DNA of 64,000 nucleotides from contig OZ025668.1 of assembly GCA_964019335.1 (NCBI GenBank), positions 434,001-498,000 on the forward strand, in the 5' to 3' direction. Position numbers and translations under genes: made by a program. The notes under the pieces were generated by a model. That model did not search any database. It saw nothing but the letters and a program-made list of their open reading frames with translations, and was not told the origin of the DNA. This document shows positions 2,450-6,200 of the stretch, in pieces. This DNA is from Diplonema japonicum. Taxonomy: Eukaryota; Protista; Euglenozoa: Diplonemea. Every line of letters starts with the position of its first letter. The first letter of the stretch is position 1.

Positions 2450-3262
2450 AAAAAAAAAAGGAGGGAAAAAAGGTCGCAAAATAAATCTACTTACGAGTTC
2501 GGCAAAAATATTATGTACCTCCTTTCCCCCCCTCTTTTTTTTTTCTTTTGCTGGCGGCTCGCCTCTACTAGGGAACAAAAAAGAATAAGAAAAAAGGGGG
2601 GGTCTCTTTACCTGAATCACTGCAAATTAAAGTAACCCAAGGAGGACTGAGATGAAGAGAAAAATAGGGCCTTTTCGTGCGATTATGTAAATAAAGTTAC
2701 GAAGGGGCCCTTGGAGGAGAAAAAAAAAAGAAGAAATACTGGAAGGAGGAAGACAAAGGTCCTTGAACATACGTTTAAGTTGCTCTCTTTCTTCCTCGCA
2801 GTTTTATAACCCTGACGAGGAAAGGATGTATGTTTGTGCAGTCGAAAGAAGAAGAGAAAAAGAAAAAGAAAAACTCGATCTATTGTGCGGTGCGCTGGTT
2901 GGTGCCCACCGTGGTCTTACACTGTATTGTCCTTCTTCGGATTTTGGTGGTAGTGCTCTCTGATAGCACGTCTCAGCGCATCTCTCACCTGGTGCGTCCT
3001 CGTGTACCTTCCACTTAAAAAAAACATAAAAGATGAAGGAGGTTGTTGGAAAAACAGTCTCCACAGCAGGAGTGGGCGGGGGAGAAAAAAAAACCCACCC
3101 ACCCCCCCCCCCCCCCCCGTTTTACAAGAAAATGGTCAACTCACCGACAAAAGTACAGGAAAAAAAAAATCACTACAAAAAAAAAGGAATGAAGGAGAGG
3201 GAAAGGCAAGAAAGAGATGGAAATCCCTTCAACACGCACGTCCCCCCCCCCCCCCCCCCCCC

Positions 3263-6200
3263 CTACTTCGAGTCTAAAGCTCGAAACTCCCAAGAATCAG
3301 GCCGCTTGTTATCGTGAAAACCCAAGTAATTGATGATGTTAAGAGCTGCCAAGTCGTCATGAGAGTGGTAGAGTATCCGGTACAACTGGGATGCATGCTC
3401 CCACTCACCAGTAACATATAATGCGTGGGCCACACATGACAACTATTTTTTTTTTCCCTACCACTTTTTCCCCCTCCATACCTTCCGAAAAGAGACTGCA
3501 ACAGTACCAGACTCTTGGGCAAGTGCGAATTTTGAGATGCTTGAGCTAGTTCTGTTTATGTCAGGAAGGAGCGGGCTGACTAATTCATTCGCTTCCGCCT
3601 CAGCTTCCATGGAGCACACAAACCGCGCACTATGCGCGCTATGCATTGCCCACACACTGTTCATCAAATTCTCATACGCAGCACCAGCAGGAAGGAGATC
3701 CGAGGGGACTTCGCACCATTTCCCGAGCTGCACCGAACCTTCATAGAAGAGAAGTGGTGAGTTCGTTCCCTTAAGGGAGGCGAAGTCTACAGGACGTGTG
3801 TACAGTTCCTTGACCTGGCAAGAGAGAAGATTATAGATATCGGTGCTGATGAGTATTTGTATGCCGTATTGTCTGGTCGCAGCCTCCAAACGGGCGGCAA
3901 GCTGAATCGTTTAATTAAAAAAAAAAAAAAAAAAAACTCAAAGTGCAGGACAAACCCCCTCATGGAGGGCCGCCCTTGGGTGGGTTGGGGGGGGGGCTAT
4001 CATAGAGTCGCTATATTTCTGAGGACGTTCCGTAACTCTACCGGCAGCGGGCCGCAGTGTCCGTTTTCACAAAGCCTTAGCATTTGCTGTTTCGCACTGC
4101 GGATCTTGTGCTTCAGCTTTTCTAGTCTTTGTTGTCTGTTCGATGCCGCTCCGACCGCCGACTCCGCCGACCTCGCACTTAGCTCCGATTTCGTAGGCTC
4201 CCGTACTTTGCCTCTCCGGTGTACACGCTGCACGTCGGCCCCTTGTACCCATGTAATAGGTACTCCTCCGTGAGGTCTGATATCTCCGAGAAAGCTTCGG
4301 TGGGCTCCTGTGCTGCTATGAACTCCCGGTACCTCGACTTCTGCATCAGTGCCTTCGCCACCTCGCCAGGCGCCTTCTTGGTCTTCGGTATCTCCTGTGG
4401 GATGGTGTACCTCAGGACTTCTTGACGAAAAGCTGGGATGTTGAGTGTCACCGACAAGCATCGGTGGTCCGACCCGGTGATCATATCGCTTACTCCGCAA
4501 TGTTCGAGACCTTGGGCCGCGATGTTATTCAGCAGGACCCTGTCAATCCTCGTGCTGCAGTTGGTCCTAACGAACGTGTCCTCCGCCTGTACACCATCCC
4601 TTCTTGCACAGAACGCAGCGGCGTCTACCCAGTCTGTCTGTATAGCTTTCCTTAGCGTGGGGATCGTGTGCTTGCCCGGCCGTCGAAGGCGACGTGGATG
4701 GGCTGCTTCTTGGACTTGGACTCTCCCACGATAGGGGAGACGATGAGGGCGCCGCCGTCGGCCGTAATCAGGTGGATGTCGGTCTTCAGTGCGCGGGCGG
4801 TGGCTTGGATGGTAACCGGGTCCGCGGCGGTCCCCTCCCTGGCGTGCTGGGAGCAGTACAAGTCGTAGTCTCCGATGACATTCACCTGATACTCCTCGTT
4901 TCCTCGCAGCTCTTGTATCATGCGACGCCTAACGTCGCTCCCCTTCTTTCCCGTCTTCTCTCCGACCACTCCGTAGAAGGAGTTTCCGTTTCCAACCCCG
5001 TACCCCTTCCCGCGGGCTGTCATCCCGTACCCCTTCAAAGCTTTGTGAACGTCCATCTTAGACCGACGCGGTAGCTTAGATTGCCAATGTGTTTGCTGTC
5101 TGATATGATCTGATATGACTTGATATTTCTTCTCTTCTCTTCTCTTCTCCTTTTCGTTGCTGATCTGTGTCGCGCTTCAACTTTCAATATTTGTATTTTC
5201 TTTTCAAACCGTTGCTGAGTGAAACTTTATTGGCACGGTCGGACACCAATAAAGTACAGAAACTGTAGCTTTAGAATCGTTGGAAAAAAAAAAAAAAAAA
5301 AACACACACACACATTTACATGCGGAGACAGGTACGACACGTCTACCTTCATTTCACTGCCTATGGGGCCTTCGACAGCCCAACCGAAATGGATGCCGTA
5401 CCCAAGGTCACAAGTGTACCCGTTGCCTACCTTTTCACAGATCATTCTTAAGGGCACGTCGTGTTCGATACGCTCCGTGCACCGCAGGGCGAAGGCAAGA
5501 GACGTTTCCGCCTTTTTTTTTTTGTTTTATTTTTTTTTCCTTCTTTTAAAATCCATACGCATCTTCTGGAGCCCGAAAGGTTGTCGATTTGGTTGACCGA
5601 TTCGCGTCGGCCTTGGACGACACCAAGCCGCCAGGTGCAGAGGAAAGCATCGCCGATGTTTTTGTTGGGCATCCCGTCGCATTCCTTGACAGTGCGGTGG
5701 ACGATCGCGGCGATCTGGTTCACGAAGAACATCACGTCCTGCCGCAGAACCTCCGTCGCGGTGGTGAAATTCCGAATGTTGCAGAAAGCGAAGACCGCTT
5801 GCACGTTCCTCCCCGGGAGCATCGTGAACAGCGTGCCGTGCTGCAAGTTCTGGGAGATCACCTCCGTCCCCGCCTCACCGAAACCAACTTGTATCAAATT
5901 CCCAAGCTTCTTAATAGACCGCACCATATGACTCGCCTCGTTGTTCTCATATGTACTCAGTTCGGCTGACCAGTTAAATCGAGCCAAAGGGTTCACCACC
6001 AATGTGTCAACAACACGTACCATTCGCTCAATGGGAGCTACTAGAACTATCTGAACATCGGTGATGATCAGGAAGTTGAACATCACCATAGAGAAGATCA
6101 CGAAGATCGTCAGGCAGACCGACAGGATGGCGACAGTCGCATTATGATCCTTTTTGTGCAGCACGAGCTCCCCTCTTGTGCTGTTGACCTGCATCGTGAC

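Follow-up and report, generated by a model that had tools for sequence, protein, structure and literature searches.

The stretch of DNA analysed here, referred to as the window, comprises 64,000 nucleotides (nt) of the genome of the marine protist Diplonema japonicum (GenBank assembly GCA_964019335.1, contig OZ025668.1, positions 434,001 to 498,000), and coordinates given without a contig name are positions within it. On its minus strand, at 3937..5283, an element headed by a copy of the spliced leader (SL) exon is inserted into a mini-intron of a host gene. The element is a dead, one-off remnant of a long interspersed nuclear element (LINE) with two internal deletions and both termini kept. 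Read on the minus strand, it consists of a run of 19 T (T19), the SL, an untranslated region (UTR), an open reading frame (ORF) resembling an OTU domain, a deletion junction, the C-terminal third of an apurinic/apyrimidinic endonuclease (APE), the 3' end and a run of 20 T (T20). This order of parts had been given in a first-pass annotation of the window, and the reading of the sequence bears it out.

At the 5' side, T19 (5284..5302) is the upstream copy of a T-rich target-site duplication and was formerly the polypyrimidine tract of the intron, as judged by reading the sequence. It is followed by a DNA-encoded SL exon, nt 3-39 (5247..5283; 37 nt, the initial AA is absent), which is identical to the 39-nt exon of the SL RNA genes at loci L039 and L057. 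The window contains a single match to the SL core, with none expected by chance, and the earlier description of the element as SL-headed stands. Immediately 3' of the SL the 190-nt 5' UTR (5057..5246) begins with a 32-nt GT...CAG segment (5215..5246); exactly this segment is absent from L066 and two further copies. Within it lies a fold-back arm, CCAATAAAGT (5224..5233), whose pairing partner is the SL 3' end (5255-5246), and the SL-arm hairpin is predicted in three families of related LINEs. The remaining UTR (5057..5214) contains a conserved block, CGGTTTGAAAAG, that is kept in families A-E, and microsatellites, as seen in the alignment to L059, a full-length copy of the parent LINE.

The ATG-initiated ORF in the ORF list encodes 134 aa (5056-4652). 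Its first 128 codons (4673..5056) are ORF1 codons 1-128 of the parent, the pseudo-OTU domain discussed below (segment A, L059 495-878), and beyond them it continues out of frame until the stop at 4652. At the first deletion junction (4668..4672) a 5-nt filler, AGCAC, stands in for 2,525 bp of the parent (L059 879-3403). Segment B (4003..4667; L059 3404-4070) matches the parent at 98% identity, contains two deletions of 1 nt each and covers residues ~222-444 of ORF2, i.e., the last third of the APE domain and the linker between APE and the reverse transcriptase (RT). Two motifs of the APE C-terminus, RIDRVL and SDH, are found here in an open frame (4661-4182). At the second junction (3995..4002) ~2.95 kb of the parent is gone, with the RT and the C-terminal part of ORF2. 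Finally, behind a C-rich stretch, segment C (3937..3994) is the conserved LINE 3' terminus, ending in ..GTCCTGCACTTTGAG with CTTTGAG last and no poly(A), and it adjoins T20 (3917..3936), the downstream copy of the T-rich target-site duplication. Segment C matches L059 7026-7094 at 68 of 69 positions, in an alignment that spans the last 60 nt of the element (to L059 7085) and runs into the flanking T-run. Taken together, the window copy is parent 246-878, the 5-nt filler, parent 3404-4070, a few junction nt and the last ~60 nt. The 3' hairpin proposed in the first-pass annotation (CCCTC-CAT-GAGGG) is present near the 3' end as an inverted repeat but not as a stable structure, as the fold of the 74-nt 3' end is thermodynamically unremarkable (z = +0.92).

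The element interrupts the host intron. The intron's 5' part, GTGTGTGTGTG (5303..5313, minus strand), stands right behind the exon codons ..CAT GTA AAT, and its 3' part, AATTAAACGATTCAG, occupies 3902..3916; the exon restarts at 3901 as LAARLE, in frame with the ORF at 3458-3889. Excision of the element and one T-run leaves 11 + ~20 + 15 = ~46 nt that begin with GT and end with AG, and preserves the reading frame (..HVN / LAARLE..), so that a mini-intron is restored as had been claimed. Two neighbouring mini-introns of the same gene, at 3443-3481 (39 nt) and 5509-5557 (49 nt) on the minus strand, are skipped in RNA-like contigs from one public run, and introns of D. japonicum have a median length of 41 nt and are GT-AG in 98% of cases (PMC12621601). 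The outcome at the window is commonplace: a dead insert that stretches a 46-nt intron to 1.4 kb.

In a search of its own genome, the full 1,347 bp of the element is matched by the window alone. Its first 611 nt and the 668 nt that follow are each found in at least 10 longer copies, where ~2.5 kb separates them. Splice-site ends are absent from both deleted segments. Their short fillers are compatible with template jumps of the RT at insertion or with later end-joining, and neither is preferred. Since the element keeps the 5' head and the 3' terminus required by the RT, it could be imagined as a mobile non-autonomous element, similar to a short interspersed nuclear element and propagated in trans by the LINE. 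However, no second copy with its junctions exists among 446 candidates in the genome, and it has frameshifts and ~2% divergence from active copies. Such a mobile element is thus hardly credible, and the term non-autonomous, given to it earlier in the sense of an amplified family, does not apply.

The parent is a 6,837-bp APE-type LINE, the ends of which are defined at four independent loci and one segmental duplicate; intact copies are 98-100% alike. From 5' to 3' it contains the SL exon, the 32-nt GT..CAG fold-back segment, the UTR, ORF1, an in-frame TGA, ORF2 and a fixed 3' end. ORF1 (747 aa) consists of the pseudo-OTU domain, a coiled coil and a Cys-rich end, and a Pfam scan of its residues 141-747 gave no match. 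ORF2 is an open frame of 1,428 aa with APE, RT and a C-terminal part. In Pfam it matches Exo_endo_phos (E = 3.9e-9, aa 76-290) and RVT_1 (6.2e-21), its closest solved relative is human L1 ORF2p (2e-14), and the nearest relatives of the RT are diplonemid proteins. No restriction-like endonuclease was found C-terminal to the RT, the domain scan of ORF2 giving EEP and RVT_1 only. Five longer copies from the four independent loci share one 3' end, CTTTGAG, without poly(A). An RT domain with an APE N-terminal to it in the same ORF, a target-site duplication, a fixed 3' end and variable 5' ends are the features of an APE-type LINE. The window element is a derivative of this LINE that has lost the RT, and the origin from an RT-bearing APE-type LINE proposed in the first-pass annotation is confirmed by these full-length parents. 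A test for OTU, APE and RT in a single ORF had been proposed; in the parent, the OTU-like domain is in ORF1 and APE-RT in ORF2. The APE fragment of the window copy by itself has no Pfam hit, and only the parent ORF2 is recognised.

ORF1 and ORF2 of the parent lie in one frame with the single TGA between them (L059 2736-2890). About 35 codons past this TGA, ORF2 contains a 2A-like motif, ..GIEPHPGP, with His for the canonical 2A Asn. Two full-length copies, L060 and L059 (contig C69, 34839-41700 and 70245-77100), are 35 kb apart. Their flanks are identical and the pair is therefore a segmental duplication, not two insertions. The parent LINE has been active recently.

Scanned by itself, the 134-aa ORF of the window falls short of the curated cut-off for Pfam OTU (E = 0.0012), and so does a single parent sequence. 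The OTU-like domain opens ORF1 in four LINE families of the genome (100, 78, 44 and 43% identity). A profile of these LINE domains finds OTUD5 (3.3e-4) and OTUD3 (0.005) as its best solved relatives, across the whole domain, and gives 120 hits among 1.8 billion proteins; in an alignment of 29 of these hits and the four LINE domains, 31 of the 33 members are Pfam OTU. An AlphaFold model (pLDDT 86) matches OTUD3, OTUD5 and OTUD1 at TM-scores of 0.74-0.77 in Foldseek, with OTUD3 at TM 0.77 and E = 2.3e-7. Profile and predicted fold together indicate that the N-terminus is a genuine OTU homologue. It is the LINE's own ORF1 N-terminus and not a captured host gene, in agreement with the first-pass annotation, as it heads ORF1 in four families.

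The catalytic Asp, Cys and His are, however, absent from the domain in all four LINE families that have it. True OTUs in the alignment contain GDGNC.., ..WGDH.. and ..HY. Families A and B have GNGNS as the catalytic box, and in C and D it is GAG-G or KDYT; the LINE domains have AADP where true OTUs have WGDH, and the aligned position of the catalytic His is Ala, Ser or Arg in 4/4 families. The changes of Cys to Ser, Asp to Asn and His to Ala are fixed in intact, near-identical copies of families A and B. Because they are fixed in intact copies, these residues represent an old, selected state and not a decay of the window copy, and the two single-base changes pointed out in the first-pass annotation belong to this state. 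The ratio dN/dS between families A and B is 0.21, i.e., the domain is under purifying selection. As Asp, Cys and His are lost and yet the domain is conserved, it is a conserved pseudo-OTU and not a working cysteine deubiquitinase, and the claim that the element encodes a deubiquitinase has to be given up. Since families A and B have Ser where true OTUs have the catalytic Cys, and since the domain is under purifying selection, it could be argued that the domain is still a hydrolase in which Ser has replaced Cys. This would be very unlikely from the alignment, as the catalytic His and Asp are replaced too and the nucleophile position is Gly or Thr in families C and D.

In Euglenozoa, mRNAs are normally capped through SL trans-splicing. 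The assembly contains 227 occurrences of the SL core, which heads many unrelated repeat families; the fold-back arm has 57 genomic copies in at least five families. We read the SL head in 30 distinct copies. Behind the SL, this LINE clade has GT(G/A)TC(C)GACCGTGCCAATAAAG, and the arm pairs with the last 10-12 nt of the SL plus G. Half of the copies (15/30) begin with 37-39 nt of the SL, three (3/30) have the full SL and then a 16-nt relict starting right behind the SL-internal CAG, and 12/30 begin with 12-16 nt of the SL immediately 3' of a T-run. These 12-16-nt heads are best explained by T-microhomology at the 5' join. SL followed by the 16-nt relict is found in L045, L054, L082, L063 and L087. 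In some copies, among them L067, L029 and L056, substitutions have altered the encoded SL. In all 30 copies, from five families, 12-39 nt of SL are joined to GT at the same SL|GT junction, which reads TTG|GT, and neither an AG acceptor nor any other sequence precedes the GT in any of them (0/30). In a retrocopy of a trans-spliced RNA the SL should be encoded at the 5' end and relicts may follow; the former is seen in the window copy and the latter in other copies of the clade, not in the window copy. The SL should further stand at a former AG acceptor, with a junction varying by event; here there is one SL|GT junction throughout.

One explanation of the head is that each LINE transcript is excised from a host polycistron by SL trans-splicing, so that the head is renewed in every cycle and no promoter is needed, as the first-pass annotation had assumed. 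An SL with a 16-nt relict arises only by trans-splicing onto the CAG in an encoded SL, followed by reverse transcription. Since relicts arise in this way only, LINE RNAs have sometimes been spliced and then copied back. In L066 (family B) and two family-E copies, moreover, the SL is joined exactly behind the CAG closing a 28-33-nt GT..CAG segment, which is a further point for renewal, as are the co-orientation of copies with flanking ORFs and the upstream T-tract, a possible polypyrimidine tract. The dominant head is another matter. TTG|GT without AG is found in 30/30 copies, in families that are 40-78% identical in their ORF1 N-termini; the relict and shortened heads that renewal predicts are a minority (3/30 relict, and three shortened found separately), and the copies read have no 5' transduced flank. 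Due to the TTG|GT junction without AG, the dominant head cannot be remade by trans-splicing of a read-through transcript, and renewal in every cycle seems to us rather unlikely. Trans-splicing of some LINE RNAs thus survives from the earlier claim, in the copies with relict SLs, but not as the source of the dominant head. The SL head appears instead to have been passed on as DNA in families with as little as 40% identity between their ORF1 N-termini.

Alternatively, the head could be a captured SL RNA, exon and start of the intron, acquired by template switching of the RT or when an ancestral element inserted into an SL RNA gene and was co-transcribed from its promoter. The real SL RNA genes were located via a search for 5S rRNA. 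One (L039) lies on contig C4 near 650090, and two copies 352 bp apart (L057) lie on contig C15 at 779080 and 779432, adjoining a 5S rRNA gene (C15:778588-778706); all are on the minus strand. They contain a conserved upstream promoter block of ~45 nt, the 39-nt exon from AACCAACG, a 92-nt intron from GTACCCAATCTG with a terminal hairpin, and a T-run terminator. Two other candidates were discarded. A ~5.5-6 kb tandem repeat on the small contigs C124-C132 (L090, L091) is not an SL gene but a chance match through the shared word CTTTATTGGTAGG, and a second pattern for the SL RNA gene matched only variants of the subtelomeric family. Separately, L032 (contig C2 near 150572, plus strand) is a nearly complete retrocopy of the SL RNA (exon and ~82 nt of intron) from which the gene promoter is absent; it is fused to an ORF-bearing sequence and resembles a chimera of the U6-L1 type. 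U6-L1 chimeras are products of RT template switching.

A capture would account for the GT directly 3' of the SL and for the exon-pairing arm, which resembles the CAATAAA arm of the SL RNA intron, and the L032 chimera shows that such fusions form in this genome. Apart from this 7-nt arm, however, the LINE sequence 3' of the SL resembles the SL RNA intron no more than shuffled sequences do (p 0.5-0.66), and a derivation of the head from the intron was rejected at this level of similarity. The real SL RNA is also predicted to adopt a different minimum-energy fold, and no copy was read within an SL RNA gene; the sites of the LINE copies read are unrelated T-rich sequences. We therefore regard a captured SL RNA as improbable. 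An Rfam scan of six SL-bearing loci gave chance-level hits only, with no ribozyme or SL RNA family.

The T-rich sites are a property of the clade. T-rich sequence follows all five element 3' ends that were read and the 5' flanks are T-rich too; one copy has a clean TTTGTT target-site duplication, and T-runs border the others on either side. Averaged over the 30 copies, the T fraction of the 15 nt just upstream is 0.71, compared with a background of 0.27 in the whole window. Insertion into T-tracts is thus supported by the flanking sequences, as had been predicted. The element and its largest flanking ORF share a strand at four further independent loci, and the window copy is in sense orientation inside its host gene. 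This co-orientation fits insertion into the sense-strand polypyrimidine tracts of splice acceptors and, equally, a dependence on host transcription. RNA-like contigs cover segments A and B and at both junction points of the window copy continue into the full-length sequence. Since they pass these junctions, the LINE family is transcribed, and none of the contigs shows the window copy itself. Apparent joints of contigs to 5244-5247 are SL ends of other mRNAs placed on the only SL of the stretch. An estimate of the SL copy number from read depth was dropped, as the bin also contains a T-run.

We consider it probable that the window element is a dead single copy of an SL-headed pseudo-OTU LINE whose head is inherited as DNA, whose RNA starts internally and which inserts by target priming into T-tracts. 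The LINE would nick a T-tract, and its RNA would be reverse transcribed from the fixed 3' end by priming on the target. Joining of the 5' side at the cap-proximal end would give a full SL, and joining by T-microhomology within the SL would give the partial heads of 12-16 nt. The SL head would first have come from reverse transcription of an SL-capped RNA and would since have been inherited as part of the element. Given the dominant SL|GT junction without an acceptor, nt 1 of the encoded SL would have to be the first nucleotide of the RNA that is copied. The simplest source of such an RNA would be an internal promoter within the conserved first ~80 nt, comparable to Pr77 in the LINEs of trypanosomatids. 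Both deletions of the window copy could be template jumps during this insertion or could have occurred later. It can further be speculated, although we would rather doubt it at present, that the first ~80 nt (encoded SL, GT, arm and CGGTTTGAAAAG block) are a self-contained start module that yields a pre-leadered mRNA without trans-splicing, in which the hairpin shields SL|GT from use as a donor. If so, this would be a euglenozoan transcript with a genome-templated spliced leader and a new route for LINE expression in a polycistronic, trans-splicing genome.

Several points weigh against this reading. The 30 copies in which the head was read cover 30 of the 57 arm-bearing copies. DNA-encoded and trans-spliced SL are indistinguishable in reads, and the internal promoter is deduced from a single feature of the copies, the missing acceptor. 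The alignment behind the structure model consists mostly of true OTUs, which may bias the predicted fold. Neither a spliced junction of the enlarged intron nor an empty site was seen in the public runs, in which contigs break at T-runs. Finally, the host gene has motifs that resemble a class III cyclase, but this identity is weak, with Guanylate_cyc at E = 0.097 in one exon of an exon-by-exon Pfam search.

SLACS, CZAR and CRE1-2 of trypanosomatids are known retrotransposons of Euglenozoa with a link to the SL. Their targets are specific sites inside SL RNA genes, and their endonuclease is of the restriction-like type. Like these, the diplonemid LINE is a non-LTR retrotransposon physically tied to SL sequence. 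However, neither the insertion into SL RNA genes nor the restriction-like endonuclease of that clade is found here: the LINE has an APE endonuclease and copies dispersed over T-tracts, the complete SL is its own 5' terminus, and no copy was read in an SL RNA gene. How a translatable full-length LINE RNA is made in trans-splicing genomes has to our knowledge been explained only for the trypanosomatid L1Tc/ingi elements, by Pr77 and a ribozyme. The hallmark of L1Tc/ingi is the conserved Pr77 signature at the 5' end of several APE-type LINE families, with unspliced transcripts (PMC1874656, PMC3185411, PMC8190864), and Pr77 binds transcription factors of SL genes (PMC1874656, PMC8190864). This signature answers the lack of a promoter within a polycistron. 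The diplonemid LINE is likewise an APE-type element of Euglenozoa with a 5' signature shared across families and a 2A-like motif before the APE. In contrast, Pr77 is not an SL, and Rfam detects no ribozyme family at the 5' end of the diplonemid LINE.

Dinoflagellate retrogenes are the closest mechanistic parallel. They contain an encoded 5' SL and SL plus relict heads; the relict SLs result from reverse transcription of trans-spliced RNA, and the SL-internal AG is re-used (PMC5585692, PMC12014239). However, the dinoflagellate sequences are copies of host genes in which relicts accumulate, whereas the diplonemid LINE carries mostly a single head, with a conserved junction and arm that would be inherited across families. 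For the OTU domain, the nearest counterparts are the OTU-APE-RT LINE proteins P0130, P0174, P0220 and P0239 from Diplonema papillatum and Symbiodinium, which belong to the same RT lineage as the parent; RT identity to the parent is 35-47% for the three diplonemid-type proteins and 30% for the Symbiodinium one. This architecture is mentioned in passing in a 2026 preprint (PMC13405545). In these LINEs the OTU retains Cys and His and is fused before APE-RT in one ORF, while in our LINE it heads ORF1 and the catalytic residues are lost.

The supplement to the D. papillatum genome describes hundreds of SL-exon pieces outside SL genes and attributes them to reverse transcription of mRNA, as a "collateral damage" hypothesis in which retrotransposon activity would produce them as by-products (PMC10161547). 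That hypothesis occupies one paragraph and includes no LINE 5' termini, conserved junction or fold-back arm. It is the nearest account in the literature, where we found no paper on LINEs of Euglenozoa that begin with an SL, and a clade of LINEs that combine a pseudo-OTU ORF1 with a heritable head made of the SL is apparently undescribed. Throughout this diplonemid clade the host SL forms the heritable 5' terminus, followed by a conserved fold-back, and splice variants of the head are preserved as fossils. In addition, an OTU domain has been kept in a retrotransposon after the catalytic residues were lost, whereas related LINEs retain an OTU that appears to be active. This provides a natural contrast for the role of OTU domains in LINEs.

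Other SL-headed sequences in the genome differ from this clade. In one family the SL is followed by GTCGTTCGTGTTCTGCTGGTGCC.., and its copies cluster within ~10 kb or less of contig ends (L087-L089). Examples are found at C5:515, C6:1908 and C21:1582 on the minus strand and at C2:1000461, C11:820968 and C44:547334 on the plus strand. The head is on the inner side and the body points outward, and copies are often stacked, some with relict SLs; this family may be a telomere-associated retroelement. SL matches at C24:7178, 17837, 28496 and 39079 are regularly spaced by ~10.66 kb, pointing to a long unit with an SL head that is repeated in tandem.

In the window itself, a G-run of ~22 nt lies right behind a TAG at 3241-3269 on the minus strand. 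RNA contigs join the SL to 3261-3269, and this position is therefore probably the trans-splice acceptor of the next downstream gene.

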